Source: Octopus sinensis (taxonomy: Eukaryota). From it: 64,000 nt of DNA. The position numbers and the translations under genes are program-made. Of this stretch, positions 16,701 to 58,155 are shown piece by piece (positions within the stretch are counted from its first letter, which is position 1; every line of letters starts with the position of its first letter). Location of the stretch: contig NC_043014.1 of the NCBI RefSeq assembly GCF_006345805.1, positions 16,244,001 through 16,308,000 on the forward strand. Direction: 5' to 3'. Under the pieces are notes generated by a model. That model was not told the origin of the DNA. It saw only the letters and a program-made list of their open reading frames with translations, and did no database searches.

Positions 16701-16990
16701 AGCACCAGTGGGAGGGGTGGTTCACAGGACAGGTTCTAGGCAAGTAGAACATAGGATATCGAGAGAGGGGTAATGCATGGTGAAATAGCGTATTGAAGAG
16801 GGGGGTTCAAAGAGTAGACACCTATAATAGTGGCGGGGGGTGCTGAAATATAGGGGAGCACCAGTGGGAGGGGTGGTTCAGAGGACAGGTTCTAGGCAAG
16901 TAGAACGTAGGATATCGAGAGAGGGGTAATGCATGGTGAAATAGCGTATTGAAGAGGGGGGTTCAAAGAGTAGACACCTATAATGGTGGG
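7726..16990. repeat. Tandem satellite, about 157-bp unit, about 59 copies, G-rich plus strand
   Basis: Unit aatggtggtgggggggtgcagaaatataggggagcaccagtgggaggggtggttcagaggacaggttctaggcaagtagaacgtaggatatcgagagaggggtaatgcatggtgaaatagcgtattgaagaggggggttcaaagagtagacacctat; agagtagacacc recurs at 7861 and 8018 (period 157). Confidence 0.97.
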
Positions 16991-23694: not shown

Positions 23695-23850
23695 TTATGG
23701 AGGCACATATGGAGGAGGTGATGTGTAGGGGGGTTGCATGTGGGGGCGCGGCTGTTTCTTGCCCTGCCACACGGTGACAGGAGGTGGTGGCTCACACGGT
23801 TGCGAGCCGAGTATGGGTTCGTTTACTCCACCGTTTCTGCGATGCCCACC
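23695..23850 (-). other. Out-of-frame dystroglycan C-terminal coding remnant (..[20 protein letters not shown])
   Basis: ORF 23695-23943 ends [11 protein letters not shown], matching the conserved beta-dystroglycan PPxY tail (human ..[11 protein letters not shown]); it is in the -1 frame relative to the main ORF. Confidence 0.9.
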
Positions 23851-25829
23851 TCTTCTTCGGTCTGGTTCGGGGTCAACTGGGTGCCCTCGCCGGCAGACGA
23901 GAGCGACATCTTTCCTCTCCGACTCTTTCGGTAACGGATGCAAGTAATGAGCAGGGCCAGAAGCAATATGGACACGATGGTGACACCAAGGACAATGGTT
24001 GAAATAAGAATAACGTTCTCATCATCAGACTGTGGTTTCTTGAGTTCTGGTGTTGTTGCTGCTGCCATTGTGGTGTCCAGCATTGGGTTGATATTGAGTT
24101 CTGGTGTTGTTGATGCTACCATTGTGGTGTCCAGCATTGGGTTGATATTGAGTTCTGGTGTTGTTGATGCTACCATTGTGGTGTCCAGCATTGGGTTGAT
24201 ATTGAGTTCTGGTGTTGTTGATGCTACCATTGTGGTGTCCAGCATTGGGTTGATATTGAGTTCTGGTGTTGTTGATGCTACCATTGTGGTGCTCGGCATT
24301 GGGTTGATATAGCCCCCAGCACAAGCTCCCATCGGGATTATTTGGGCCGATTGCAGCTTGAAAGGTTTCATTGCTTTCCTTGCTGAAAGTTTCACCCGCT
24401 TTTTGTCATCAACTAGGCGTTCAAAAAGGGCATTGGTAGCATCATCGGGGCATTTTGTGCCGACGAGAGTGTTGTTTGTCCATGACACCTCCACAGACCC
24501 CTCTGTTATTTCGAGCACTGTGACGCTGCTCGCATCTGCGTCTCCGTACAATTTGCCGATCTTGTCAATGAGATTGAGCCTCGAGTCGAGGTTTGACATG
24601 AATTTCTTGTACTCCATACTGAACTTCATCTTGATCTTGTGGGTTACCTTGTTGCTCTTGAGGTTCTTGTTCTTCAGAACCTTCACGAGGAAGTCCATGT
24701 TGTTGAACATTCCATCACTGTTTATCGCCACCACTGTCACGTTGAGGATGCCCACATTGCTTTCCATTGGCAGCCCAATTATGCTCTTGTTATTGGCCGG
24801 GTCTCTCTGCAGCCAAATGTTGGGAGGGAGTTGCTTAAGGAAAAATGCCAGCATCAAGCGGTCGCTGGGCACCTTGCAGTCAATGAACGTGTCAGATGGC
24901 ACAGAGAAGTAGGCTCGCTTCCCGACCTCGAATTCCTGTACAGGAATCCTGTGTGCTATTCGTGGTTTTAGCTTTCTTGCGCGACTGCAATATTCGGGCA
25001 TGCTGATGGCCATTCCATCTGTATGTCGGTGGTGGGTCTTGTGCGAATGCAGGTGGGTGCGCGTCGGTGCAATGTCAGTGACAGCCGGGGTGGCCATGAT
25101 GGCTGCACGCCTTACTCTCTTCTCAGGCAGGGTTACTTGTCTGTTTGTCACATGCCACCCTACAACTCCATGACCGAGGAGCTCGGACAAGGTGCCATTT
25201 GCTGAAATTGATTCCACCCTCTGTAGAACGTTCATGTGCTGCAGCTCCACTCGGCCACAACCAACCAGCCACGTGACAAGCACCCCGGGGTGTTTTGCGA
25301 TTTTTGTGTCACCGGGCCCTGATACAAGGGTGGATGAGGACGATGTGTCTGGGGTGACTGCATGGACAGGAGGGATGGGCCTGTTGCCAGTGGTGGCAGG
25401 ACCGACCTTAAACATCTCAGACACAAGCTCTAGATTGTGCTCCAGTTTCTTTAACAGTTCCACAATGCCGTGGGGAGGAAGTTGATCAAGGTCTGCATCA
25501 ACAATTAGCGTAAATGCTGTCTCTGGCTCCTGGGGCATGCATCGGATGACTGGTGGAGAATTTGAACCCTTGCTGTTCTTCTTTGATGATGAACCACTGA
25601 TTGCTGCTGCTTCTGCCGCCGCTGTGGCGGGTTTCGAGCTTTCTTTGGTCACATGAATCGAGAAGACGTCTTTGGCGAACTGACTAACAGCTCCTTGGTC
25701 CTCAGCCTGCGCCACAACCTCAATGTAATACTGGGCGATGTCTGCTGGTTTCGGGACTCCAGAGAAGGTACGAGTCTCAACGTCGAAATACAACCACTTG
25801 GGTAGGGTCGTCTTGCCAGCCTCCATTAC
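23823..25829 (-). CDS. DAG1: Dystroglycan-like protein, coding exon 2 (Ig/cadherin-like, S6-like, furin site, short mucin, second Ig, SEA, TM, truncated tail)
   Basis: Acceptor ttccag|GTA at 25830/25829; VMEAGKTTLPKWLYFD..FSGVP, furin site RVRR (25118-25107), EG/SVEVSWTNNTL autoproteolysis site (human RG/SIVVEWTNNTL), hydrophobic TM followed by RYRKSRRGK; TAA at 23825-23823. Confidence 0.92.
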   Translation of the reverse strand, partial: VMEAGKTTLPKWLYFDVETRTFSGVPKPADIAQYYIEVVAQAEDQGAVSQFAKDVFSIHVTKESSKPATAAAEAAAISGSSSKKNSKGSNSPPVIRCMPQEPETAFTLIVDADLDQLPPHGIVELLKKLEHNLELVSEMFKVGPATTGNRPIPPVHAVTPDTSSSSTLVSGPGDTKIAKHPGVLVTWLVGCGRVELQHMNVLQRVESISANGTLSELLGHGVVGWHVTNRQVTLPEKRVRRAAIMATPAVTDIAPTRTHLHSHKTHHRHTDGMAISMPEYCSRARKLKPRIAHRIPVQEFEVGKRAYFSVPSDTFIDCKVPSDRLMLAFFLKQLPPNIWLQRDPANNKSIIGLPMESNVGILNVTVVAINSDGMFNNMDFLVKVLKNKNLKSNKVTHKIKMKFSMEYKKFMSNLDSRLNLIDKIGKLYGDADASSVTVLEITEGSVEVSWTNNTLVGTKCPDDATNALFERLVDDKKRVKLSARKAMKPFKLQSAQIIPMGACAGGYINPMPSTTMVASTTPELNINPMLDTTMVASTTPELNINPMLDTTMVASTTPELNINPMLDTTMVASTTPELNINPMLDTTMAAATTPELKKPQSDDENVILISTIVLGVTIVSILLLALLITCIRYRKSRRGKMSLSSAGEGTQLTPNQTEEEVGIAETVE
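24041..24310 (-). repeat. Coding minisatellite, 54 bp x5 (INPMLDTTMVASTTPELN)
   Basis: ccattgtggtg recurs at 24065 and 24119 (period 54); five units in the translation. Confidence 0.95.
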
Positions 25830-25982
25830 CTGGAAAGAATAGAAAAAGGAGGAATGATTAGATATTTTAGTTGATGAAGGACAAAAAGAAATCATTTAAA
25901 AGCAAAAATTAAAACAAAAAACACCAATAACAAACTATAGATACAGATACAGCTTAAAAATAAAAATAATAATAATAATTAT

Positions 25983-26376
25983 AGGCACAGGAGTGGCTGT
26001 GTGGTAAGTAGCTTGCCTACCAACCACATGGTTCTGGGTTCAGTCCCACTGCGTGGCATCTTGGGCAAGTGTCTTCTGCTATAGCCTCGGGCCGACCAAT
26101 GCCTTGTGAGTGGATTTGGTAGACGGAAACTGAAAGAAGCCCGTCGTATATATGTATATATATATATGCGTGTATGTGTTTGTCCCCCTAGCATTGCTTG
26201 ACAACCAATACTGGTGTGTTTACGTCCCCGTCACTTAGCGGTTCAGCAAAAGAGACCGATAGAATAAGTACTAGGCTTACAAAGAATAAGTCCCGGGGTC
26301 GATTTGCTCGACTACAGGCGGTGCTCCAGCATGGCCGCAGTCAAATGACTGAAACAAGTAAAAGAGTAAAAGAGTA
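25983..26376 (+). mobile_element. SINE family A, full length
   Basis: A/B boxes, core and aaaagagta tail as in other copies. Confidence 0.9.
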
Positions 26377-26780
26377 ATCCTTTCTACTGTAGGCACAAGG
26401 CCTGAAATTTTGGGAGAGGGGACTAATTGATCACATCGGCCCCAATGTTTCACTGGTACTTAAATTTATCAAACCTGAAAGGATGAAAGGCTTATTGTTC
26501 TCAAATATCTAGATATCAGCAACAACAACAACAACAACTATAACCAGTAATATTAATCACAGCTATACCATACATTAGATCTAGTTAGTTAGTTAGTTAA
26601 TTTTTTGGCTCGAAAAGCAAAAAGCAAGGCTATGTAGGGGGACATGGAGTTATGTACAGGGTGGTGTTCATGTAAATAGTTCAGGCCACTTGAGGTCTAA
26701 AGTATAGTAGAATGCCTGCCCATGGTAGTTTGCAGAAGTTTAGGGACTTTTATAACTGACCTTAGTCATTTTACTACACA

Positions 26781-27941
26781 GCTAATAAGCTGACCTGCCA
26801 ACTTTTGTTGTTCCAGATGGCTGAAACAACATTCTGGACAGACCCAACTCAAACACTTTGTTACAGTTGACCAATCTGTAGAATGTAATTGTGATGTGAA
26901 GACAAGTAGGAAGCTTGCTTGTAACTGTCCTAAATTATTGTAATTTCAGTATTTCATTATCATACATCTAATAAGCTGACCTGCCAACTTTTGTTGTTCC
27001 ATATTAGCCCTTTCATTACTGTATTTATTTTGAGATGCTCTGTGTTTCTTTCAATTATTCTAAATATAACAAAGAATTTAGCAAAATAACTTAGTTATCA
27101 TTCAGCTACTGTTAGGAACATAAATTGTGACTGAGGTTTGATAGAAGATTTTAATTCAAAACTTATGGAAACAAGAAATTTGTACTCAGAGCCAGAGCCG
27201 GTTTCAGCTGGGTTGGTAACGAAAGGGTTAAAGGAGACAGCTATTAGAGCACTTTGAACCCATCCTACAAAACACTGTTTGTTACAGTTGACTGGTTTGT
27301 AGAATGAAATCAGGATGTGAAGAGAATTTGGAAGCTCACCACACAATGGAGTTTTGCATTCTAACCGTCCTAAATTTTTGGAATTTCATTATCGTACATT
27401 TAATAAAGCTGACCTGCCAACTTTTGTTGTTCCAGATTGAAGAAGGCGGCTGTAACAGCAATTTGGAAACATCCTGCTATAAACACTGCTTGTCTTGGTT
27501 GCTGAGTTTGCAGAATGTAGCTGTGAGGTTTGGAAGCTTTTTATGGAATACAATTTTGTGCTAATCACAGCAAAACCATTAAACATCTCTTTTTTTTTTT
27601 TTTTTTGCATGTCACAGCTGAATAAATTTTGTGTTCTGTCTTATTATCGTACACCTAACAAGCCAACTTTTGTTATTCCAGATTGAAGGAGATGGCCACA
27701 GCAGAACTTTAGAAACATCAAAGAGCATGGTTCTGGACCCTTTCACTTCGGAGGACTTCCGTGGGGCCTTCACGAATTAGCTGAAGTACTTACAACAAAT
27801 GTATTAAAGTCAGGGGATCCTACTTTGAAGGAGTTTTGGACATGTCGTGGTTGCCCAGTTTGCAGAATGAAGACAATTTAGAGGCTTGCTATGCAATGAA
27901 ATTTTCTGTTCTGTCTTATGTTATTGTAATTTCAGTATATC

Positions 27942-27976
<35 letters not shown>

Positions 27977-28170
27977 TATTATTATTATTATTATACATTA
28001 AATAAGCTGACCTGCCAACTTTTGTTATTCCAGATTGAAAAAAATGGTTGTAACAGCAATTTGGACACACCCTGTTAAACACGGCTGGTCACAGTTGACA
28101 AGTTTGCAGAATGAAGTTCAGGACATGAAGACAATTTGGAAGCTTGCTATGGAAACCTTATGAAATGCTC
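26781..28170 (+). repeat. Five diverged tandem units (about 190-350 bp), each starting with a splice-acceptor-like motif
   Basis: aataagctgacctgccaacttttgttgttccag at about 26784, 26970, 27402, 27655 and 28001. Confidence 0.85.
27008..27227. mobile_element. piggyBac-like MITE
   Basis: TTAG|CCCTTTCATTAC ... GTAACGAAAGGG|TTAA: 12-bp imperfect TIRs and TTAA-type target; interrupts one unit of the local repeat. Confidence 0.7.
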
Positions 28171-29114
28171 CAGACTGGCAGAGAGGAGGGGAGAGACAAT
28201 GAGAGGTATGAGTGGGAGAAAGAGACATGAGAACACCAGAGATGGCTGGGGTAAATTGGCAATCATGCGTCTGTGTGTCTATAAAGACAATAAGCAAACA
28301 GATTGGGATTGGCCCCTGTGCACAGAATTATTCATGAAGGTGCAAAAATTTGCGCCAAGTTTGCTCCCAGGGTGCTCAATGGTGAGCATTCTGGTAATGG
28401 ACTACTTGGCAGGGATGGGCTTGAATAAAAGTTGGGATGGTCACAGCTGGATCATCAGGACTGACCTGGGACTAATGGTGAGCATTCTGGTAATGGGCTT
28501 GAATAAAAGTTGGGATGGTCACAGCTGGAACATCAGGACTGACCTGGGGATAAACAACATCTCCACTCACACAATACCAAATGGAGCTTTTATGTGGTCA
28601 CATCACATGCTCGAAAAAGCAACCAAATTCCCCTCAAATCACACACCACTGTATCTCTCATTAGACAAATATAGTTTTGGCTCTTTCCAGCTGTGGGAAA
28701 ACTATGGGATGGTCATAGCTGGATTGCTTTTGATCATAAAAAGCCTCCTTGTTTAGAGCTGACCCAGGCCTATATATGACAACACTTAACCACAGGCATC
28801 ATTTTAATTATATGTTGAAAGCTTACACACACACACACACACACAGTCATATAACGATCACACACATATCAAAAATCACATATAAACACACACCCCACCA
28901 TCACAAATTTTACACACACACACACACACACTATACCAACATCACAAACCATAAGACATACATACACACACAGAGGAGATAAACAACATACATACACACA
29001 CACATATACATACTAATACATATACACAAACACAGCATACATACATATATATATATATATATATTCACACACAGATAAGCAACGTACACGCGCATACATA
29101 CAAACACATACATA

Positions 29115-29390
29115 TATATTTCTTTACTGCCCACAAGGGGCTAAACACAGAGGGGACAAACAAGGACAGACAAAGGGATTAAGTCGATTACATCGACCCC
29201 AGTGCGTAATTGGTATGTAATTTATTGATTACATCGACCCCAGTGCGTAATTGGTATGTAATTTATCGACCCCGAAAGGGTGAAAGGCAAAGTCGACCTC
29301 AGCGGAATTTGAACTCAGAACATAACAACAGACGAAATACCGCTAAGCATTTCGCCCTGCATGCTAACGTTTCTGCCAGCTCGCCGCCTT
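29115..29390 (-). mobile_element. SINE family B (tRNA-headed, Nin-domain-like core)
   Basis: On minus strand: A-box tggcagaaacgttag, B-box gagttcaaattcc, core gcctttcatcctttcggggtcgataaattaagtaccag, tail gtaaagaaata; small internal duplication. Confidence 0.88.
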
Positions 29391-29444
29391 AAAACGCATA
29401 CATATAGATACACAAGGTAGACAACACACACACACACACAAGGC

Positions 29445-29815
29445 AGGAAGCTGGCAGAAACGTTAGCACGCCGGGTGAAATGCTGCTTAGTGGTGTTATT
29501 GTCTGTCTTTACGTTCTGAGTTCAAATTCCGCCAAAGTCGACTTCGCCTTTCATTCTTTTGGAGTCAATAAATTAAGTACTTATTTCTTTACTGCTCACA
29601 AGGGGCTAAACACAGAGAGGACAAACAAGGACAGACAAATGGATTAAGTCGATTACATCGACCCCAGTGCGTAACTGGTACTTATTTAATTGACCCTGAA
29701 AGGATGAAAGGCAAAGTTGACCTCGGTGGAATTTGAACTCAGAACGTAACGGTGGACGAAATACGGCTACGCATTTCGCACGGCGTGCTAACGTTTCTGC
29801 CAGGTCACCGCCTTT
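29445..29815. mobile_element. Two SINE B copies in opposite orientation (+ 29445-29580, - 29578-29815)
   Basis: Plus-strand head/core abuts the tail of a minus-strand full copy. Confidence 0.85.
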
Positions 29816-29821
29816 ATATAT

Positions 29822-29857
<36 letters not shown>

Positions 29858-30035
29858 AGGTACATTAGAGATATATATCTGTATATGTGTGTGTGTGTGT
29901 ATATATAGCTTGGCAGATTGATGGACAGACGGATATATAGAGAGGCCATAGCCTGCAAATTAAATTCACATCAGTGTTCATATTGGGAGTGCTTAAAGTT
30001 CAAAAGGCTAAACATGTATGTGTGTGTGTATTCTT

Positions 30036-30406
30036 TCTTTTCTTTTACTTGTTTCAGTCATTTGACTGCGGCCATGCTGGAGCACCACCTTTAATCGAGC
30101 AAATCGACCCTGGGACTTATTCTTTGTAAGCCCAGTACTTATTCTATCAGTCTCTTTTTGCCGAACCGCTACGTGACGGGAACGTAAACACACCAGCATT
30201 GGTTGTCAAGCAATGCTAGGGGGACAAACACATATATATATATATGCGACAGGCTTCTTTCAGTTTCCGTCTACCAAATCCACTCACAAGGCTTTGGTCG
30301 GCCAAAGGCATAGCAGAAGACACTTGCCCAAGATGCCACGCAGTGGGACTGAATCCGGAACCATGTGGTTGGGAAGCAAGCTTCTTACCACACAGCCACG
30401 CCTGTG

Positions 30407-30410
<4 letters not shown>
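30036..30410 (-). mobile_element. SINE family A, full length
   Basis: Reverse complement of the 25983-26376 type. Confidence 0.9.
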
Positions 30411-30445
<35 letters not shown>

Positions 30446-30447
<2 letters not shown>

Positions 30448-31230
30448 TCATCATCATCATCATCGTTTAGCGTCCGCTTTCCATGCTAGCATGGGTTGGA
30501 CGGGTCAACTGGGGGTCTGTGAAGCTGGAAGGCTTCGTCAGGCCCAGTCAGATCTGGCAGTGTTTCTACGGCTGGATGCCCTTCCTAACGCCAACCACTC
30601 CGCGAGTGTAGTGGCTGTTTTTTACGTGCCACCTGCACAGGTGCCAGACAGAGCTGGCGAACGGCCACAAACGGATGGTGCTTTTACGTGTCACCGGCAC
30701 GGGGCCAGGCGATGCTGGCAACGGACACGAACGGATGGTGCTTTTACGTGCCACCGACACGGGGCCAGACAGAGCTGTAAAACGGCCACGAACGGACGGT
30801 GCTTTTATGTGTCACCGGCACGGGGGCCAGCCGAGGCTGGCAACGGACGCGACGGATGGTGCTTTTACGTGCCACCGAACGGGGCCAGACGAGCTGGCAA
30901 CGGCCACGAGCGGACGGTGCTTTTACGTGTCACTGGCACGGGGTCCAGCCGAGGCTGGCAATGGACACGAACGGATGGTGCTTTTACGTGCCACCGACAC
31001 GGGGCCAGACAGAGCTGGCAAACGGCCACGAACGGACGGTGCTTTTACGTGTCACCGGCACGGGGCCAGGCGAGGCTGGCAACGAACACGAACGGATGGT
31101 GCTTTTATGTGCCACCGACACGGGGCCAGGCAGAGCTGGCAAACGGCCATGAGCGAATGGTGCTTTTACGTATCACCGGCACGGTTGCCAGACGAGGCTG
31201 ACAGCGGATACGAACGGATGGGTCACTTAA
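30446..31230 (-). mobile_element. RTE 3' UTR/tail with a 10-unit, about 60-bp tandem array
   Basis: ggtgctttta anchors at about 30613, 30677, 30737, 30798, 30858, 30916, 30977, 31038, 31098 and 31159; (GAT)n tail. Confidence 0.88.
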
Positions 31231-31260
31231 CCCCTGCTTTCTGATATATGATTTGATTTT

Positions 31261-32010
31261 GATTGTTCTCACTGGTCTTGCCGGGTCTTCTCACGCACAG
31301 CATACTTCCATAGGTCTCGGTCTCTGGTCATTTCCTTGGTGAGACCTAGAGTTCGAAGGTCGTGCTTCACCACCTCGACCCAGGTTTTCCTGGATCTACC
31401 TCTTCCACAGGTCCCCTCAACTGCCAGGGTGTGGCACTTTTTCACACACCTATCTTCATCCATTCTCACCACATGACCATACCAGCGCAATCGTCTCTCT
31501 TGCACACAACATCTGATTCCTCTTAGGTCCAACTTTTCTCTCAAGGTACTTACACTCTGTCGACTATGAACACTGACATTACACATCCAACGGAGCATAC
31601 TAGCTTCATTTCTCGCGAGCTTACGCATGTCCTCAGCAGTCACGGCCCATGTTTCACTGCCATGCAGCATGGCTGTTCGTACACATGCATCATACAGTCT
31701 GCCTTTTACTCTGAGCGAGAGGCCTTTAGTCACCAACAGAGGTAAGAGCTCCCTAAACTTTGCCCAGGCTATTCTTACTCTAGCCGTTACACTTTCAGCA
31801 CACCCACCCCCACTACTGACTTGGTCACCAAGATAACGGAAGCTATCAACTACTTCTAGTTTTTCCCCCTGGAAAGTGACGGAAGTTGTTTTCTGCAGAT
31901 TTTCAGAGGTTAATGCTGCCGAGCATCTGCCACATACAGAAACCATCTTCCTAGTTAGCCTTCCTATGACATTGCTGCACCTCTTATGTGTCCATAGCTT
32001 ACATTTGGTG
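31261..32010 (-). mobile_element. RTE-clade LINE ORF 3' fragment
   Basis: VVDSFRYLGDQ..ARVRIAWAKFRELLPLL..MLHGSETWAV..RRLRWYGHVVRMDEDRCVKK..GRGRSRKTW. Confidence 0.92.
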
Positions 32011-32157
32011 CATATATATATATATATGTTTGTATGTGCACATATATATGCATATGTAGTATGTATTGATGCAACATGCAGTGTATGTATGTGTGTATAT
32101 GTAAGGGATGTGGACACACGTATGTGGAAATCTGTATGTGTGAATAGAGGTAGATAG

Positions 32158-32200
<43 letters not shown>

Positions 32201-32214
32201 ATATATATATATAT

Positions 32215-32400
32215 AGGCGCAGGAGTGGCTGTATGGTAAGTAGCTTGCTTACCAACCACATGGTTCCGGGTTCAGTCCCACTGCGTGGGATCTTGGGCAA
32301 GTGTCTTCTGCTATAGCCTCGGGCTGACCAATGCCTTGTGAGTGGATTTGGTAGACGGAAACTGAAAGAAGCCTGTTGTATATATGTATATATATATATA
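32215..32400 (+). mobile_element. SINE family A 5' half (split by the Helitron)
   Basis: Head and core end in the internal TA tract where the Helitron begins. Confidence 0.88.
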
Positions 32401-35400
32401 CTAGCAGCATAGCCCGGCGTTGCCCGGGTATGTAAAACCCCCTAGTAGGCAACGACTAATCCCAATGTAGTCCTTTCCCTCCAGGGAACGAAGGTGCATG
32501 TGGACGTTGCAATGTCTTGTCTTCACTGGAATACTTCTGTATATACGATGTTCCTAGCTGTCCGTTGGGCGAAAACATGAAAACATCATTGCGCCTCCCA
32601 ACGCGGTGAACAGCCCACGTAGAGGTGACCGTGGGCGAAGCACTGTTCGCCCAAATGTAACCCAGCGACTTGGCCTTGGGATTTATTGATGGACATTGCG
32701 AAGCAGAGTTTAACAGGAAACTGAGAACGCCTGAACCTGAAGTGGATTGGTAGGTCAGTGCCCGACGGTTGAAGGTGCATCCGTGGAATGAAGACGTCCT
32801 CTCCCTTCCACAACCGGTAAGTATTGTGGCCGTTATTAAATGTGGTGCCAAATGTTTCACAACCAACGTGTGCCGTTGCCACTGTTTAGGTGGGGAACCA
32901 AATTCCTGATGAGCATAATGGGCGCACCGACTTTTAACTTCAGGATGTGTGGTGGCAGGCCTGGCGGTTCAAGTGAATTCAGGAATTCAACAGGATAATC
33001 GGCAAGCTGGGCGGGGTCTGCTGTCTATCTATAGATTGTAGACGTGGACATCACCAGGAATAGCTTCAAGTAGCTGGATATTGATGGAGTTGACGGTTGT
33101 ATTTTGGGTGCGAGAATAGCTCTGCCTGCCAGCCATTTTAGGTCGCGTAAATTGTTTTGTAGGTCGTGGAAGACAGCGTCCCGGAGGCTAGCAGGGGTGT
33201 CGACAATGGTGCAAAGTGAGTCCAATTGAACGTAGCCATCCGCATCAGACAGCATCCTATTTTCACCGAGCGATAAGAGGTCCTGGAGAATGCAGCGGAT
33301 CCGCTGTCACCAATTAACTGCGCGCGCATGTTAGTTGGAGGTGCAAGGGCCGCACATGTGCCAAAGAGCTGACGACTTAAGGCACGCCCGCACGGCATCG
33401 GCACGGGTTCTTTTGGAATAACAGGTAGAGTCTGCTGAAGTCTCCTGAAAGAAGTAAAGTTAATCCTCCCATGGGGGCCGTTAGAGTCTCTGATGTCTTG
33501 CAGGGACTGTCCAGTGCCTCAAGGCGCCTTTGTGTGCCATAGTGCACTCGTCCATACGATGAGTTTGCATCTGCGAAGAATGTCGGCCTGTTCTGAGTTC
33601 TTGGCGATGGTTGCAGATAGGTGACTCGGACTTTGCCAGATCGAGCGGGAGTCTGAAGCACAGAGTGGGCGGTTCTGCCACCCGGAAGCAACGTGTAGCG
33701 ATACCAGAGGAAGCTACAGCCAGGGCAATGTCCGGTTGCGTCTGACCTCTGCCAGAATTAGTTAGTTAGTGACGAAGGTTTTGCCTGTGCCGCCGGGTGC
33801 ATCAAGGAAGAAAATACCCCCACGTTGCTGTCTGACAGAGTCTACGATGGTGTTGTAGGATTGCGCTGGTCTGGAAGCAGCCGTGGTTCATTATCTTGGA
33901 CGTACTGGTGCAGTTCCTCAATGCAGTAGGAAGTTTCGCGTAACAATTCAGCAGACATAACATTGGCGTGTTCACGTGTGGGTGGTGGAAGGCGTACTCT
34001 GTTAAAGCAGACCCACCCATATTGATGACAGCGTCTTCGAGTTGAATGAGCGCAAAATTGTAAATGAAGTTGGTGAACGTGATCTCGGCGGAAGGGCAGT
34101 GTTGCTGAGCGTACGTAAGAAGTCGTGCGACATGTCATCCCTGTATTTCATCCAGAGACTTAGTGGATGACTAAGATGACATTTTGAAGAAGGATTGCGA
34201 AAAGATGTCGTAGGGCCGAATGCGTTTGCAGTAAAGCACCCTCTGCCATCGTGGCGTCCCACTGGGAGTCATCCTCTAGAAGGCCAAGTCTCATACATGC
34301 TTCCCTGAAGGTGTCGCACAGAACCCCATTGACGGTACGTATATTGGCGAAACCTGTTGGACCAGTGACCTCATGCAGAAGGAGACGGAGAGGTAGAAGC
34401 ATTCTTGCTGGTTTGGCGGGATGTTGTAAACTCGACCCAGGCAGGAGTAAACTTGACGCCTGGGAAGCTTTCGACCGTTTTTGCCGGATTTCCGTCGAAC
34501 CCAGGTGTTTTAGACCACACGAAGTACGATGGGACCTGTGGGTACAAAAGCGTTCGAGCGAAGTCATCACGTTGGCATAATTGAAGAAACCAGTCAACGT
34601 TGTGTCTTTAGGGCTGGTGGCTATTGCACAGCACTTTGCTATGTGAAGTAAATCCGCTGTCCATTTTCCAAGTGTACAGCAAGCTGCACCACAGCCGGCG
34701 GTGTCTCTGATGGAGCGGGAAGCCGTAAATGCGCCAAAACGCTTCGTTGCTGCTGAGGTACCGGCCAGCCAAGTAGTTGGACACTCGTCGCGACTGGTGG
34801 TCCTCTGGATGCTGAGAAATGGCAGCATCGCTGCCTTGTTGATATATTTGCAGAACATATTGTATTGACCTGATGAGGAGCTGCAGAACTCAACGTTGAC
34901 GTGGGCTTTGAATATCTTCGACAGGAGAGGACAGTAGTAGGGGACAATGTAGCTGTTGTCCACTTGATGTGTCGCCCAACCGTAATCGTGCGGCCTCCAT
35001 TGGCTAGACTCCTTCGTTTGTACAGCGGATACCATCGCCGCCTGTTTGAGTCTCCAAAGTGAACGTTTAGGGAATCCCTTTGAGCAGGCTAATCCGTTTT
35101 TGTAGCATGGTGTGTGTGGCGTAATTGGTCCACAGGGCCCGTGTACCATGGTAGTTGCGGACAATTTCGTAGAGTCCGGGGTCCTCATCGGGGTCAGGAA
35201 TCTCGCGGAAATGAATTTGTCAATGTCATTAGTCTCGATTTTATGAGTGAGCCAAAATTAAGATGTGAGCATGTGGCAAGCCCCTCTTTTGCCACTCGAC
35301 CGAAAAATGTGGCATCTGACATGCCCGAAAATCTGACCCTTAACTATCAAATCCTTCATTTTGCCCAAATTCAGACGGAAAACCCTAGCAACGATGTCGT

Positions 35401-37816
35401 GTCGAGGGTGTGTGAGATTGACCCGGGAGGATTTCGCGAGTGATTTCGTCGCAGCTGGGATTGCACGTGTAGGTGATAAAGAGGTCCGGCCGGCCGTAAA
35501 TGCGCACGTAGGTCAAGGCGTCTTGGGTCCTTTCAGCATAATCGCGGTCCTCCCGTGAAGTGGAGGGTAGAATGCATGGCTTGCCGATGTTGCGAGGGTC
35601 ATTTTCTTGTTGCAAACCGTCACGGAGATGAATGTAGGAGTCGGAGCGAAGTTGGTCTGATTAAGTTTAATGTATAGCAGCCTTTCCGATTCCATTTTTG
35701 CGGCCATGTCGACGGCGAACTGGTTGAATAGCTGACGACAACGGGGCAATAAGTTGAACTCACCCTCCCTGACCATGAAACCGGTATGAGTAGAACGCCT
35801 GCAGGAAACCGTCTTTGATGCCGCAGTAGTTTGATTGGAGGGCTGCCGTAAAGGAATTCCGAAGTGGTAGCCGTCTTCCCATAAGGGAACAAGCAATGGA
35901 TACTGAAGCGCGTCATAAGATCTGTGAGTCTCGCTGATCTGTGTAGGTTGTTACCACGGGAGGAGATGATTATGTCACAAGCTGTTGTGTTGCTCTCCGT
36001 TGTATAACTGCGGCAATTCGTTGCACGCAGGTGCGTTGAAACGGCGTTCGTGCTCCCGTGGGTCGTTTATCAGCATCAATGACAACGGTGAAGTTTGGAG
36101 AAGGAGCACTGTCCAAGGCATATCTGAAGCTGCAGACGTAGCTGTTGATATCATGAAGCATGGTTTGGAGCCCTGGCTGTGTTTGCGGCGTTAGCAGCCT
36201 GGCGAGCTCTCCTCTGTTGAGGTGTTTCGGCAGCTTTGGCTATGGCTTTGTTTGCGGCGTCAGCATCTTGGCGAGTTCTCCTCTGCTGTGAGGTTTCGAC
36301 AGATCGTGTCCTGGCAGTGCTAGTGGCGTTAGCCGCATTCCAAATGGCCTTTGTTCGGGGGGGTTCTCGCGAGCTCTGCGGATGGAAGCACAGTAAGAAG
36401 CCCGCATGTTTTGGCTGGACTGTTGCTCTTTGTCTTCAACCTCGAGCGGAGGGAAGATCTGTACGCTGCGACCCTTGCAAGTCGGGTAGAACGGTCGCTA
36501 GTAGTTTCAGATGCCTGAGCAGCGGCATAACGGGAAGCTGTTTGCGAGAGGCGCAAGGCGGTTTCCTCGTGGGTCTCGCGTGCCCTTCTAGCCCTAGCAG
36601 CCGATGCCTTGGCCGTCCGAGGGCGGCTAGGAGGGGGGTCCTTCTCTTCTTGGGTGGCATTTTGGTGGATAGCAATGTGTTTGGCAAAGTGTAATAAAAC
36701 GGAACACGGGGGTAAGTATTTTGGTGGATAGCAATGTGTTTTGGTAAAGGTGTAATAAAAAGGAGCTCGTGGGGTAAGTATCCGAAAATGTATAAAAATG
36801 TACAAAAACGGCCAAAAAGCTGGCAGCAATGTGAGTGACAACAACGAAAAAGTCAAAAGTGATCAAACTGAACAAACGAAAGGAAAAGTTTTTTGATGCA
36901 CACGACAAAAGTGGTTTATAATAAAGTGGTTTCTAATAATAAGTTTGCAAGTAGCGTCCGAGGACCATTAGGGTACGTCAAAAATTGAAGGTAAAACGTT
37001 TGGGGTGGTAGTTATAAAGAAAGTTTAAACCCAAAAAGTATTCGAATAACTTGCGGCTGCAGCAGCTATTAGCAGAAGTGGCGGTGTTGGGGGTAAGTCT
37101 CGAATGTAATTTCTTCTGGTAGGAATTGGTTGGATCGAATTATCGATAGCTAAAAAGGTCAAGTTGCGTCCCCTAGACAGTCTGGTTTGTGTTAATACAC
37201 AAATTTGTTTGCTATGTGTGCCACATATGATTAAATTAACCGATTTTTTCAATAATGTATCCTATTGGAATAAAAGGGCTATATAGCTCCTTGGAGCAGA
37301 CATGATGCTCGTTTGAAAAAAAAAAAGATTCCTGCCAATTTGTGAAAGATATTGTCGAAAATATGTCATCTTGAATTTGAACGCGATTTCCCAAAATGGC
37401 ATGATTTTATCGATGTTTCTGATGGTAAGGTATTGCATGGAAAACTAACGTCAGAATTGAGTTTCTTAGGGGGTAACATTAAGCTTCACCATGAGTTTGG
37501 TGAAAATCGATTGCAAGTTGTGAAAATACCATAGATAATGCGTTGCATAAAAAAAGCTTAGATTCTCGAGTTGCGTCCCCTAGACAGTCTGTGGTTCATG
37601 TTTATGATTCTCGACCCCATGTCGAATTTATCAATTTTTTTCAGAACTGGGGGAACTTTTCAAACTTTTCGCTTCGTTAGTTTTGAATTATGACATTGGG
37701 CTATGTGTGTGTCAAGTTTCATCAGAATCGGTTGAAAGCCGTGGTCAGGGTGAGGGTACGAGAAAACAGACACACAGAAGCACGCACAGACAAACTGCCG
37801 TTTATATATAGAGAGA
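32401..37816 (-). mobile_element. Full-length, frameshift-riddled autonomous Helitron (Rep HUH + PIF1 helicase)
   Basis: 5' A|TCTCTCTATATATAAA at 37816; 3' hairpin 32413-32428 + CTAG|T at 32401; Rep motifs PDLFITYTCNP, VEWQKRGLPHAHILI, MVHGPCG; helicase motifs DAPGGTGKT, LPGGRTAHS, SINKSQGQ, spread over several frames. Confidence 0.93.
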
Positions 37817-38045
37817 TATATATGCGTGTGTGTGTGTGCGTGTATGTTTGTGTGTTTGTCCCCCTAGCATTGCTTGACAACCGACGCTGGTGTGTTTACA
37901 TCCCCGTCACTTAGCGGTTCGGCAAAAAGAGACCGATAGAATAAGTACTGGGCTTACAAAGAATAAGTCCCGGGGTCGAGTTGCTCGACTAAAGGCGGTG
38001 CTCCAGCATGGCCACAGTCAAATGACTGAAACAAGTAAAAGTGTT
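37817..38045 (+). mobile_element. SINE family A 3' half (continuation after the Helitron)
   Basis: Resumes with the TA/TG tract and tgtcccctagcattgcttgacaacc.. to the tail. Confidence 0.88.
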
Positions 38046-39034
38046 AAAAGAGTAATGTGGCTGTGTGGTAAGAAGCTTACTTCCCAACCACATGGTTCTG
38101 GGTTCAGTCCCACTGCATGGCAGCTTGGGCAAGTGTCTTGAGTGGATTTGGTAGATGGAAACTGAAAGAACCCCATCAGATGTGTGTGTGTGTGTTTGTC
38201 CCACACCACTGTTTGGCAACCAGCCTTGGTGTGTTTACATCCTCGTAACTTAGAGGTTCAGCAAAAAAACTAATAGAACAAGCACCGGGGTGAAAATGGT
38301 GCCCCAGCATGGCCAGAGTCCCATGCCCAAACCCACTTACAAGGCTTATGGTCAGCCCAGGGCTTGAATAGAAAACACTTGTCCAAGGTGGTGTGCAGTA
38401 AGATTGAACCCAAATCCACATAGTGGTTGAGAAGCCAGGATTTGAACTCCTGACCTTACAATCGTGAACCCTATACCCTAGCACTAAGCCACGTGCTTTC
38501 ACAGGAGGGAAGAAACAACACAAGGTACCACTGCAATCCGAAACAAATTAATAACAGGAAGTTGAGGCTTTCATCCAGGCCTGCTGTGATCCAGTCAGCC
38601 TGTGGCACCAGTGATGTGACATATAGCAGTGAAGGTAACAGCAAACTGTTATTTTTAGCAAGGTGGGTGACCACATATATGTACCCTCCTTGCTCCAAGC
38701 TGCGAGACGTTCACTGATGTTGTGGCAAGGAAGCCTCTCCCTCTATATAGCACACAAGTGACTAACACCCCCCTCGTCAATGTTTCATGCACTGGTCAGA
38801 CAGATAAATTTGGTACAACTTCATTAAATATTAGGATTAATTGATTAACTAATGGACTCATTAATTATGTATGACATTATATAATTAAATTTGGCTGGAA
38901 TAGAAATTGTAGTAATCAGTCAACCGAACAATGAAAGTAACTAGGGTTAGGGTTATCAGATTTGCTAGAAATAACAGTTAAACCTTTGTTGAATCTTACA
39001 ATGATGTCGTGTAAAACTTAAGGCTGTACAACAA

Positions 39035-39650
39035 CCACTAATACTAACTACTTTACTATACATTAGATAATGTAGTCCTAGATACACTATGTCTTTATAA
39101 AAGATGAGATGGCCACAGATGGAGCATCTTTGATCATGGGTCTGTCGGGATCAGGTCTGATCAGGAGTTAAACAAAAACAACTATAGCCACTAGTACTAA
39201 CTACTATACTATACATTAGATAATGTAGTCCTAGATATACTATGTCTGAATAAAAGATGGGATGGTCACAGCTGGAACATCTTTGATCATAGGTCTGTCT
39301 GGATCAGGACTGACTTGGGGTTAAACAACAAGAACTGTAGCCACTAATACTAACTACTATACTATACATTAGATAATGTAGTCCTAGATACACTATGTCT
39401 GAATAAAAGATGGGATGGTCACGCTGGGACATCTTTGATCATAGGTCTGTCTGGATCAGGACTGACTTGGGGTTAAACAAGAACTATAGCCACTAATACT
39501 AACTACAATACTATACATTGGATAACGTAGTCCTAGATACACTATGCCTGAATAAAAGATGTGACTGAATAGAAGACAGGATGGTCACAGCTGGAGCATC
39601 TTTGATCATGAGGCTGTCTGGATGAGGACTGACCTGGAGCTAAACAAGGT
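39035..39650. repeat. Tandem repeat, about 150-bp unit x4
   Basis: ccacta(a/g)tactaactac at about 39035, 39188, 39341 and 39490; related fragments at 28420-28560. Confidence 0.9.
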
Positions 39651-40862
39651 AAGAAGAGATCTTTTTTGTCAGTCAACTGTTAGGATAAAGAGGTGAGTGT
39701 GAGTGTGTGGAGTGGAGTATGACACTTGAGTGTGAGAGAGGAGTAACAATGTGGCAGTGAGGCTTTTTATCTTCATTGCACACGTACACACTTTATCATA
39801 AAACCTCACACGCACACACACAATCAAAGCCTCTCACTCACATTTACATACACACAGGCCCACTACCACACACTCCCTCACACCTTTATACACGTGCACA
39901 CACACACACACACACACACACACACCACTACAAATAAGAACCAAGTACGATATTGATCGTCAGTTGAATCGGACAATCATTATCAATCAGCTGTTCAATC
40001 GACCGAATTAAGTGCCAGGAGTGGCTGAGTATCCCATGGACACGTATAACCCTAATGTAATTCTCACACAGCACCGGCGTGACACTAACACAGATGGAGG
40101 CCTTCGAAACACCAACACTACTACTACTACTATCAGTGTTGTACTCACCACCATTCACAAGGCTTTGGTGGTCAGCCCAGGGCTATAGGGGAAGACAGTT
40201 GCCAAGGTGCCACACAGTGGAACTGAACCTGAGACCACTGTGGTAGGGAAGCAAACTTCTTCACCAATGAACAACGCCATGCTTTTGTGGCACATTGCTG
40301 TACCCAAGAAAACCTGCCAACCACAACAGAATGGAGATCCTAAAACCAAAGTGCCATGTAAGACAAGCATTAGTGTGAGTGCTGGTGTCACGTAAAAAGC
40401 ACCCAGTGTGAGGGGGGGTATCCAGCTGTGGAAACCAAAACCAAAGCAGACATGGAACCTCCTGTGGACCCTGGCCTTGCAAGTTCCTCCTATGAAACTA
40501 TCCAACCCATGCCAGCATGGAAAAGTAGAACTTAAATGTTGATGACAACGGTGCTTATTGAGTAAGGAGCAGATGATGCCCTTTTGATTCTCTGACAGGC
40601 TGCAAGAATCTTAAGCAAGGTGGAATGAAGGGCTTTGCTCAAGAACTCACATGCATTCACTAAGAGACCGTATATCTTCATGAATATTCCAAAAATCTTA
40701 AATTCCCTATTGTGTGCATGAGAAATATATATACACATACATGAATACACACACACACACATAAAGACATACATATATGCATACATAAATACATACAAAT
40801 ACATATACACATACATACTTATACACAACTACATACACACACACACACGCATATATATATAT

Positions 40863-41085
40863 ATTTCTTTACTACCCACAAGGGGCTATACACAGAGGGG
40901 ACAAACAAGGACAGACAATCGGATTAAGTCGATTACATCGACCCCCAGTGCGTAACTGGTACTTAATTTTATCCCGAAAGGATGAAAGGCAAAGTCGACC
41001 TCGGCGGAATTTGGAACTCGGAACGTAACAGCAGACGAAATACGGCTACGAAATACATGCTAACGTTTCTGCCAGCTCGCCGCCT
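40863..41085 (-). mobile_element. SINE family B
   Basis: Same diagnostic head/core/tail. Confidence 0.88.
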
Positions 41086-41269
41086 TTATATATATATATT
41101 ACATACAACTGAAGTACTAAATAATCCTCCAGTTTCATATTAAATTGTTTTTAGATACGATCTGACATAAAAAACAAGCATTTGGGTGAGAGAGTAATTG
41201 CATTGGTACCCAGACTGACGACGGTTAACAGAAAGTATCAGATACACTTGTATAACCATACACATATAT

Positions 41270-41304
<35 letters not shown>

Positions 41305-41644
41305 GTAATGTGTACATCATAGTCTATATGGATACAATGATTTTGCATGCGAGCTAGATTGCGTATACATATGTGTACATGCATTTGTGTGTTTATTTTA
41401 GCTTTGTATTTATACGTCTGTATATGTATGTGGTCTGCGCACATCTATCTGTGTATTTTGATGTATATATGTATAGTTTAATATGAATATGTACTGTTGT
41501 GTAATATTTTAATGCATTTTAACATTTTATTTTCAATTTTCATGTATTAATTATATTTCCTTTATTAATGACAATATGTATTTTAACCAAAGATTTGATG
41601 TAAGGTTTTTTCCTCGAATTTTATAATTTTTATATATATACATA

Positions 41645-41880
41645 TATATTTCTTTACTACCCACAAGGGGCTAAACATAGAGAGGACAAACAAGGACAGA
41701 CAAAGGGATTAAGTCGATTACATTGACCCCAGTGCGTAACTGGTACTTAATTTATCGTCCCCGAAAGGATGAAAGGTAAGGTCGACCTCGACGGAATTTG
41801 AACTCAGAACGTAACGGCAGACGAAATACGGCTACGTATTTCACCCGGCGTGCTAACGTTTCTGCCAGCTCGCCGTCTTC
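41645..41880 (-). mobile_element. SINE family B
   Basis: Same diagnostic head/core/tail. Confidence 0.88.
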
Positions 41881-42233
41881 AATTTTTATATATGTATATA
41901 TATATATATATTTTTTGAGCTCATTTTTGTTTATCGCTCGAAAATTTGACCGTTATTTGTAAAGGACCACTCAAAAAAGTCCATTTTTAAAGGTGTAGCA
42001 TTTATACTAGTCTGGATAGAATTGACATATCGGTTCTATTCTAGCAAAAACTGTCCGACGAACGACAACGTGAAACTCAGAGTAACAGGTTTTGTTGAAT
42101 TTTCTGCTGATTTAAATAAAGCATATTACTCTACCACTGGTATTTGAGTACTCTTTTTTCCACCTTGTTTCACATTTATGTGTTTACTCCGGTATTATAT
42201 ATACATATATATATATAATATAATATATATATA

Positions 42234-42273
<40 letters not shown>

Positions 42274-43292
42274 TATATGTAGTAATCAAGTACATATACA
42301 CACCAGGCCATAGGATGAAACTCCATGTGAATACACATACACACACAAATGTGGATGTAAACACAAACATTGCATCATCATCATCATCTTTTTAGTTTAT
42401 TTTCATACTGACATTGTTGTTTCTTTCCATTTCATATCATTATTAAGGAATGAGAGAGAGCAGCGCCAGCCATTGTTATTATTGTTATTACTTCTCTATA
42501 GCTATTATGTTACACTCACAAGAGACATGTGGAAGTTTTCTATTCCTACATGTTCCCCAAGGCTACGCTGACACACAAACTTATCTACCGTACAACATAG
42601 CAGGCCCCTGTCACTGAAGGTTGACCGTGCCTATCCAGACATGCACGCACTTTCCCATGGGGCAGGGGTAGGGATTTGGGGGGAGGCGGGAACTTCCACA
42701 GAGGGACTGGCTACATTACTAATGAACCACACTTTCCCCTACCCCTCTCCACACCACTGAAGGTTTACCTCAGACAAAGGTCACTGACCTGGGTCAGTGC
42801 ATTGACCCAGATCAGTCCCAACTACTTGGCTCCGGGTTCAGTCACACTGCATGGCACCTTGGGCAAGTGGATTTGGTAGACAGAAACTGAAAGCCCGTCA
42901 TATCTATCTAGGTGGTGCTCCAGCTTGGCCACAGTCAAATGACTGGAACACATAAAACAATAAAAAATAAGATATATAATGAGAACGCATGGTCTTATGG
43001 TTGAGAAACGCTGGGTTTAAAGTGTGACAGAGAGGTCTTGCTATAGAAGAGGTACATGGTTAGCTGGCCAGAGAGAAGGAGGGCAGAAATAGGTGTGCTG
43101 TTTGTAAAGGAGGTACATGGCTACCTAGGCAGAGGTAAGGGCAAGCGATGGTTGGAGAGAGAGTGATCAAGAATGAGGGCAGAAACCGGTTGTTGCTGTG
43201 TGGAGATATAAGCTTACACCACCAAAGGGAGTAGGAGGTAGCAAGAGCGGGAGAGGGTGAAGTGCCAGGGGATACTCGCAAGGAATGGGGAT

Positions 43293-43570
43293 CATCATCG
43301 TTTAACGTCCGCTTTCTATGCTGGCATGGGTTGGACGATTTGATTGAGGGCTCGTGAACCAAATGGCTGCACCAGGCTTCAATCTTGACTTGGCAGAGTT
43401 TCTACAGCTGGATGCCCTTCCTAACACCAACCACTCCGAGAGTGTAGTGGGTGTTTTTACGTGCCACTGGCACAGGGGCCAGTCAGGTGGTACTGGCAAC
43501 GACCTCGCTCGAATCTTTTTACACATGCCACCGGTACAAGTGCCAGTAAGGTGACGCTGGTAAAAATCAT
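43293..43570 (-). mobile_element. RTE 3' tail fragment (family C)
   Basis: atcatcatcgtttaacgtccgc..ggatgcccttcctaacaccaaccactcc. Confidence 0.8.
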
Positions 43571-43764
43571 GCATAAATGAGATTGTAGAGTAAAGAAGAG
43601 AGAGAAAAATGTGAATAAATAAGTATCACATTTGGTAGAATAATCCAAATACGAAAGGGTTAAAAAAAAGGGACAACAGTGGGGGTTGAAGGGATGGAGC
43701 AGAAATCAATATAAAAGCAATGCAAAACGAGAGAAATGAAAAGTGCAAGAGATGGGGTACATAC

Positions 43765-57707: not shown

Positions 57708-58155
57708 TCATCATCATCGTTTAACGTCCGTTTTCCGCACTGGCACGGGTTGGACAGTTCGACCGGGGTCTCGGAAGCCAGGAGCTGCATCAGGCTCTAG
57801 TCTCATCTGGCAGTGTTTCTACAGCTGGATGCCCTTCCTAACGCCAACCACTCCGCGAGTGTAGTGGGTGCTTTTTACGTGCCACCGGCACAGGTGCCGG
57901 GGAGTCTGGAATCGGCAACGATCAGTTGGTGCTTTTAATGTGTCACCGGCACCAAAGCCAGCCGAGGGGTCGCTGGCATCGGCCACATTCGGATGGTGCT
58001 TTTTATGTGCCACCGGCACAGAAGCCAGTCGAGGCGGCACTGGCAACGACAACAATCGGTTGGTGCTTTTTATGTGCCACCGGCACAGAAGCCAGCCAGG
58101 GCGGCGCTGGCATCGGCCACGTTCGGACGGTGCTTTTTATGTGCCTCCGGCACAA
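57708..58155 (-). mobile_element. RTE 3' tail with about 5 repeat units
   Basis: ggtgcttttt anchors repeated at about 60-70 bp spacing. Confidence 0.82.

Follow-up and report, generated by a model that had tools for sequence, protein, structure and literature searches.

Truncated dystroglycan paralogs in a tandem array of Octopus sinensis, with the PPPYVPP end stranded out of frame

In two published surveys (PMC4582122, PMC5216574), dystroglycan is described as single-copy outside teleosts and lampreys, and the beta-subunit tail with its dystrophin-binding site as one of the most conserved regions. Here, we analysed a stretch of 64,000 nucleotides from Octopus sinensis (GCF_006345805.1, contig NC_043014.1, positions 16,244,001 to 16,308,000), referred to as the window, which contains a dystroglycan paralog with two coding exons on the reverse strand of chromosome CM016876.1 (GCA_006345805.1, about 16.268-16.288 Mb). 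Coordinates follow window numbering, and the gene lies on the minus strand. The most conserved part of dystroglycan has been removed from it by traceable deletions of 1 and 144 nucleotides, while the remaining frame is protected from frameshifts and stops. From these sequence comparisons, we consider it probable that the gene belongs to a young tandem family of dystroglycan paralogs in the lineage of Octopus vulgaris and O. sinensis, and that these paralogs, with little of the mucin region or the tail left, would be uncoupled from dystrophin and are kept as open genes.

The main reading frame of the window gene ends at a TAA that a first-pass annotation, made from the letters alone, had placed at 23825-23823, and the minus-strand reading agrees. 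The same annotation had given the cytoplasmic tail about 38 residues; the tail is indeed short, but counts 37 residues and ends in the peptide ...GTQLTPNQTEEEVGIAETVE. The canonical tail reads YRKKRKGKMSLSSAGEHDAYSGKGAPVIFAEELEDKPTDCQRPLILDDEKPPHPPPEYQ... and, aligned to the canonical O. sinensis gene, the window gene carries two deletions in this region. One is the loss of a single G from CCAGGACC, as expected from the 3n+1 deletion that had been proposed. The other spans 144 nucleotides in frame and took out HDAYSGKGAPVIFAEEL...PPPEYQHSSSE, i.e. the GAPVIFAEEL block together with a PPPEY motif; the canonical gene shows GCGA at each end of the corresponding stretch. The missing KGxPxIFA block was lost by this in-frame deletion, separately from the loss of frame by one nucleotide. 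A one-nucleotide repair yields a tail of 80 residues (25 + 55) that still lacks GAPVIFAEEL, just as had been predicted for a KGVPIIFADEL-like block. Is the PPPYVPP motif in the other frame more than a coincidence? The open reading frame 23695..23943 contains 54 codons that are colinear and gapless with the C-terminus of canonical octopus dystroglycan, with seven residue differences, and the out-of-frame tail is therefore not due to chance. The gene thus retains a membrane span, and the conserved PPPYVPP tail lies in another frame past the stop, as the first-pass annotation had read it.

Both tail lesions occur in all eight copies that we aligned at the nucleotide and protein level, four from O. 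sinensis and four from O. vulgaris; they therefore arose once, before the amplification of the array and the split of the two species. In O. sinensis at least four tandem copies, including the window gene, are spaced by about 75-78 kb, and an independent assembly of O. vulgaris (GCA_951406725.2, OX597833.1) contains at least four as well, located at 22.86, 22.94, 23.06 and 23.22 Mb; additional copies may lie in its gaps of 121 and 157 kb. The single divergent paralog envisaged earlier is thus a paralog, but one member of a tandem family with at least four copies per species, and it has also lost most of the mucin region. A second, canonical dystroglycan and orthologs in other octopods had been named among the checks of this proposal, and both were found. 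The canonical full-tail gene of O. sinensis (XP_029652175) resides on another chromosome, CM016885.1, and the window gene is therefore a paralog and not the sole dystroglycan of the genome. Canonical full-tail DAG1 is also present in O. vulgaris (CAI9744143) and O. bimaculoides (XP_014780592), and the long-tail architecture extends to the cephalopod-like proteins P0005-P0007, the bivalve-type P0009 (Mytilus) and P0010. Further changes common to all paralogs are mucin deletions of 30 and 51 residues, a loss of three residues in IG2 and a longer Ala tract, while an 18-residue stalk unit, present once in the canonical gene, varies between two and five copies. The O. vulgaris copy P0020 carries an additional one-nucleotide deletion earlier in the cytoplasmic tail, which suggests that the region past the juxtamembrane segment is not needed.

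By homology, domains and gene structure, the window gene is clearly a member of the dystroglycan family. According to the literature (PMC5216574), dystroglycan coding sequence lies in two exons and the position of the IG1 intron is conserved, and the window gene has this structure. Exon 1 is 100% identical to residues 1-154 of the NCBI model XP_036366867 (P0003) in tblastn and contains a visible hydrophobic signal sequence; a splice acceptor upstream of it implies a non-coding 5' exon further upstream. Exon 2 encodes, in order, the rest of IG1, S6, an RVRR furin site, a mucin remnant, IG2_MAT_NU with the Gly-Ser maturation site, a repeat stalk, the membrane span and the short tail. Spliced together, the exons give the 821 residues (154 + 667) that had been stated for the open reading frame. 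Pfam matches to He_PIG (residues 125-200) and a_DG1_N2 (250-384) exceed their gathering cut-offs, and DAG1 is matched with E = 6.6e-24; the best DAG1 stretch extends over positions 3-127 of the 290-position profile, vs 3-290 in the canonical protein. In protein searches the window protein matched octopus dystroglycans with E = 0 and 79-93% identity, and the bivalve-type P0009 and P0010 with E <= 1e-77. The N-terminal alpha-subunit module (signal peptide, IG1, S6) is present. The paralogs as a group keep these parts together with RVRR and the adjacent ATPAVTDIAPT, IG2_MAT_NU, the membrane span and the juxtamembrane basic cluster. The IG2_MAT_NU maturation motif LEITEGSVEVSWTNNTL has the canonical sequence in every copy, and cleavage is predicted. 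Two defining features of the family nevertheless fail, namely the PPxY tail and the O-glycosylated, mucin-like region with its ligand-binding glycan, of which only about 30 residues are left after RVRR, ATPAVTDIAPT among them.

How did the family originate? Introns and flanks are 92-99% identical between the paralogs and 82-95% identical to canonical DAG1, and the duplication was therefore segmental and no retrocopy. A processed pseudogene was accordingly ruled out, given the kept intron and the intron and flank homology to the parent gene and the other copies. Synonymous divergence (dS) amounts to 0.175-0.197 between the paralogs and canonical O. sinensis, 0.325 between the canonical genes of O. 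sinensis and O. bimaculoides, 0.03-0.045 between paralogs and 0.005-0.013 between orthologous pairs of O. sinensis and O. vulgaris. These values suggest that the family is younger than the split from O. bimaculoides and that amplification of the array followed later, all before the split of O. sinensis and O. vulgaris. Among the annotated proteins of O. bimaculoides we found no paralog, a comparison made at the protein level only, the genome DNA not being searched directly. The window copy is inverted and stands first in the O. sinensis array, and its O. vulgaris ortholog P0019 stands third and is oriented like its neighbours; either the arrangement was changed by a genuine inversion or translocation, or the two assemblies were scaffolded differently. 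The N-terminus of the paralogs (...IFNMERDVGAPPPAPVAASMQLKLNDIQ; L001, L006 and exon 1 of the window) is closer to canonical O. bimaculoides than to isoform X1 of canonical O. sinensis (...GEMVPGGGPSKQLKLNDIQ), and the first coding exon of the canonical O. sinensis/vulgaris gene, or its usage, may have changed after the duplication.

Could a normal dystroglycan gene have been misread at this locus? The public gene model might seem to say so, because it tacitly repairs the frame so as to finish with PPPYVPP. XP_036366867, labelled 'LOW QUALITY PROTEIN: dystroglycan-like', exits the true frame at ...ERLVD, continues for about 45 residues in another frame, thereby bypassing four of the five stalk repeats, and reaches PPPYVPP through a second shift at ...GTQLT. 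This forcing back of the frame is an annotation repair and no evidence on the gene; the model misrepresents the protein and is unsuitable as its sequence. An assembly or sequencing error would have to have produced the same one-nucleotide gap next to the same 144-nucleotide deletion at four loci of O. sinensis and at four loci of GCA_951406725.2, while a real canonical gene exists on another chromosome. Since identical lesions stand at eight loci in two independent assemblies, the gap is not an assembly error, and we give this explanation practically no weight. A real lesion could still be bypassed if the frame were restored in the mRNA or during translation, by a mini-intron, ribosomal frameshifting or RNA editing, so that PPPYVPP is made after all. 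By eye we found a 59-nucleotide GT..AG interval at about 23850-23792 (gag|gtgggc...gtgtgag|cca), which has phase 0 and the right length (3n+2), and whose removal would fuse ...TEEE to PPPPVT...PPPYVPP*. The GT of this interval is, however, ancestral, as it also stands in the canonical gene of O. bimaculoides, where it is translated and unspliced, and the interval has no polypyrimidine tract. In three of the eight copies a TAC to TAA change in the ancestral frame precedes ...SPPPYVPP, P0020 has its further frameshift upstream, and A-to-I editing is unable to alter the frame. The changes in the 54 stranded codons tell the same story. Among the paralogs we counted 2 synonymous, 11 replacement and 1 nonsense change, where 3.4, 7.7 and 0.6 are expected under neutrality from the non-coding DNA of the copies themselves. 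Between canonical O. sinensis and O. bimaculoides, in contrast, the same codons differ at 13 sites (counted by eye), all of them synonymous (Fisher P = 6e-6). The stranded tail is unconstrained and evolves neutrally like untranslated DNA. We therefore judged the mini-intron unlikely, given its ancestral and translated GT, the three downstream stops and the neutral-looking changes, and frame restoration of any kind appears very improbable.

Is the rest of the reading frame maintained? For the paralogs as open and maintained genes, the strongest evidence comes from insertions and deletions. We used a CpG- and transition-aware neutral model calibrated on the aligned non-coding sequence of these eight copies (about 17 kb) and, for the indel expectation, treated simple-sequence and complex positions separately. 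Across 32 kb of non-coding sequence in the copies we counted 524 indel events, and 89% of these have lengths not divisible by three. By this yardstick the exon 2 reading frame should have accumulated 18.7 frameshifting indels and exon 1 another 5.2 (about 24), whereas one was observed, in the already truncated cytoplasmic tail of P0020 (Poisson P ~1e-9). For nonsense changes the expectation among the copies is about 3.5, and no real one was found; a single flagged change was taken as a two-base codon change, because every copy is open to the tail. On the paralog stem, i.e. with changes polarised by the O. bimaculoides outgroup, six of the seven indels preserve the frame (P = 8.5e-6), and start codons and splice sites are intact wherever checked.

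The substitutions, for which dN/dS (omega, the ratio of nonsynonymous to synonymous divergence) was obtained by simple Nei-Gojobori counting, draw a less uniform picture. Counted in this way, dN/dS is 0.22-0.28 between paralogs and canonical genes and 0.43-0.86 among paralogs and orthologs. The paralog stem as a whole has 19 synonymous and 37 replacement changes (omega about 0.6), vs 38 and 6 in the canonical O. sinensis lineage (omega about 0.05; Fisher P = 9e-8). This comparison had been put forward earlier as a check, and it returns constraint on the paralog stem that is far weaker than on the canonical lineage. By region, the stem shows 8 synonymous and 3 replacement changes in the N-terminal half, 10 and 22 in the IG2_MAT_NU region, and 1 and 12 in the stalk, transmembrane and juxtamembrane part. 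Among the copies, the two halves of the ectodomain show replacement changes at 0.67 (P = 0.03) and 0.62 (P = 0.015) of the neutral level. For the membrane and juxtamembrane part the figure is 2.2 times neutral, and half of the 16 changes there stem from LOC118767040. This copy carries 11 private substitutions (8 replacement, 3 synonymous) in 56 codons of its membrane span and juxtamembrane region (L002, about 29100-29270), about seven times its own non-coding private rate. Gene conversion from a copy outside our sample, or decay confined to this stretch, could account for the cluster. As half of the excess originates from this one locally clustered copy, we make no claim of positive selection for the membrane span or the juxtamembrane segment.

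Several observations weigh against the paralogs being maintained genes and are what one would expect if the whole array consisted of recent duplicates that have no function and are on the way to becoming pseudogenes, for which the tail frameshift was a first hit and the open frames merely reflect recency. The variant density of exon 2 among the copies (6.2%) matches the context-adjusted expectation from non-coding rates (about 6.4% by hand calculation), the density in non-coding DNA itself being 5.35%. The 37:19 ratio of replacement to synonymous changes on the stem is near the roughly 2.1:1 of the neutral model, and after hand rescaling by the neutral replacement-to-synonymous ratio the stem omega rises from about 0.6 by site counting to about 0.9. 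Replacement changes fall short of neutrality with no more than marginal significance (P = 0.015-0.05). Recalibration with the neutral model weakened the omega of the paralogs from 0.4-0.7 by counting to 0.62-0.8 of neutral. Moreover, the paralog clusters consist only of genome-derived NCBI/UniProt predictions, with no members from transcriptome assemblies, NCBI flags the locus as low quality, and some members may be decaying, judging by the second tail frameshift of P0020 and the LOC118767040 cluster. The binding of matrix is also uncertain, because the ligand-binding mucin region is largely gone. Given how weak the substitution signal is after recalibration, the case for maintenance rests mainly on the deficits of indels and stops. 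These deficits, the in-frame stem indels, the 8 to 3 excess of synonymous changes in the N-terminal half of the stem and the intact splice sites and start codons speak against young non-functional duplicates, which we hold to be rather unlikely. Disabling mutations do not accumulate at the neutral rate of a duplicated pseudogene; relaxed constraint is clear, and full neutrality is unsupported. Frame integrity is protected and amino-acid constraint is relaxed. The earlier view of a maintained divergent paralog in place of a dead pseudogene thus holds for the frame, but has to be qualified for the amino-acid sequence, and we infer the maintained status of the paralogs from this pattern.

For this family of maintained paralogs we propose the following course of events. 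A segmental duplication of canonical DAG1 at the DNA level would have generated a founder copy, which, before the array was amplified, would have lost most of its mucin-like region through two in-frame deletions and expanded the 18-residue Thr/Ser/Pro stalk repeat. The founder also lost 48 tail codons, the GAPVIFAEEL block and PPPEY among them, and a single base, so that translation ends 37 residues past the membrane span. The old PPPYVPP end has since been an untranslated 3' region in neutral decay. The paralog protein would presumably be made, cleaved and displayed like dystroglycan, and by analogy with vertebrate and fly dystroglycan biology it should be unable to engage the WW domain of dystrophin or utrophin via a C-terminal PPxY. 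Its most likely role would be that of a membrane-anchored ectodomain devoid of a dystrophin link, one that might, for instance, organise the matrix or serve as a competitor or decoy. We speculate, and only tentatively, that octopuses of the vulgaris complex keep under selection a tandem family of dystrophin-uncoupled dystroglycans with an O-glycosylatable stalk of variable length, which could organise the matrix, compete with the canonical protein in a dominant-negative manner or be fast-evolving decoys for binders of the ectodomain. If such a selected receptor family exists, it would be the first dystroglycan gene family of an invertebrate and a natural experiment that splits extracellular from cytoskeletal functions. 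If the copies are expressed, they would form a natural separation-of-function allele series of the dystroglycan ectodomain without dystrophin, in an animal of unusual muscle and nervous tissue.

Coordinates of the window gene, its tail lesions and the further O. sinensis paralogs
Feature	Position	Strand	Sequence	Content and basis
Coding exon 1, 154 residues	43762..44223	(-)	window	Start codon, signal peptide, first part of IG1; donor AAG|GTATGT
IG1 intron, about 17.9 kb	25827..43761	(-)	window	Holds repeats and retroelement fragments; GT-AG splice sites
Coding exon 2, 667 residues + TAA	23823..25826	(-)	window	Acceptor TTTCCAG|GTAATGGAG (GTA first) at 25826
Mucin-like region remnant PTRTHLHSHKTHHRHTD	25016..25068	(-)	window	Between in-frame deletions of 30 and 51 codons vs canonical DAG1; protein alignment, junction coordinates derived from alignment residue indices
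54-nucleotide tandem repeat, 5.0 copies, extracellular stalk	24040..24310	(-)	window	18-residue Thr/Ser/Pro-rich unit TTPELNINPMLDTTMVAS; Tandem Repeats Finder and alignment
Transmembrane segment ILISTIVLGVTIVSILLLALLITCI	23937..24011	(-)	window	Aligns with canonical membrane span
Encoded cytoplasmic tail, 37 residues, RYRKSRRGKMSLSSAGEGTQLTPNQTEEEVGIAETVE	23826..23936	(-)	window	Basic juxtamembrane cluster retained; final 12 residues frameshift-derived
Junction of 144-nucleotide (48-codon) in-frame deletion	23886..23893	(-)	window	Lost HDAYSGKGAPVIFAEELEDKPTDCQRPLILDDEKPPHPPPEYQHSSSE; alignment A1 columns 151-294
One-nucleotide deletion, frame shifts	23861..23862	(-)	window	Canonical CCAGGACC (CAGGACC) to CCAGACC (CAGACC); alignment A1 column 323
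New stop TAA	23823..23825	(-)	window	In all paralogs, within ancestral G-V-N codons; tail alignment
Stranded ancestral tail, now 3' untranslated region	23695..23822	(-)	window	PPPYVPP at 23718-23698, old TAA 23697-23695, ancestral frame
Paralog LOC118766913	16.342 Mb		CM016876.1	O. sinensis
Paralog LOC118767037	16.419 Mb		CM016876.1	O. sinensis
Paralog LOC118767040	16.498 Mb		CM016876.1	O. sinensis

The window contains several further sequence elements. Downstream of the gene lies a satellite array of 9.3 kb (7727-16989) with 59 copies of a 157-bp unit at about 95% identity; as the same satellite is found beside LOC118766913 (L004 1-4799), it is part of the duplicated block. A fragment of a non-long-terminal-repeat retrotransposon of the LINE type (long interspersed nuclear element; 3961-6302, plus strand) carries an endonuclease/reverse-transcriptase reading frame that a frameshift splits into 572 and 212 residues (Pfam Exo_endo_phos_2, RVT_1). 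Two open reading frames within the intron, 31269-32300 and 34160-35188, have no Pfam match. Tandem repeats of 61/121 and 67/134 nucleotides at 30620-31221 and 57867-58154 have the common motif GGTGCTTTT(T)A(C/T)GTGCCACCGGCAC, with related sequence in other loci, and probably represent a dispersed octopus repeat.

How do these paralogs compare with known dystroglycans? We found no paper that mentions the octopus loci, including in a full-text search by their LOC and XP identifiers. With canonical octopus DAG1 the window gene has in common the two coding exons with the IG1 intron, the signal peptide, IG1, S6, RVRR, IG2_MAT_NU and an identical EGSVEVSWTNN, as well as about 78-80% protein identity over the segments aligned by tblastn and homologous introns and flanks. 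Relative to canonical DAG1 it lacks 81 mucin residues, 3 residues of IG2 and 48 residues of the tail, its final 55 codons lie out of frame, and the paralogs differ in stalk length (two to five units vs one) and in stem omega (about 0.6 vs about 0.05). An engineered mouse dystroglycan that lacks the cytoplasmic domain of the beta-subunit, and is thus a membrane-anchored ectodomain with no dystrophin link, reportedly keeps some basement-membrane functions. This mouse allele retains the full mucin region, whereas the octopus paralogs have lost most of it, and the analogy is therefore a lead and not a test. In the portions of the surveys that treat gene duplication (PMC4582122, PMC5216574), Dag1a and Dag1b of teleosts and lampreys are the only dystroglycan duplications described so far. 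As presented there, they come as paralogue pairs, with an additional S6 mini-intron in one, and not as tandem arrays, whereas in the octopus a tandem array arose recently and its copies are truncated. A natural dystroglycan without the dystrophin site is known, according to the same surveys (PMC4582122, PMC5216574), from Trichoplax adhaerens. There, it is the sole dystroglycan reported, represents an ancient state and has a duplicated IG2_MAT_NU, whereas the octopus loss is recent, can be traced to a frameshift and occurred alongside an intact canonical gene.

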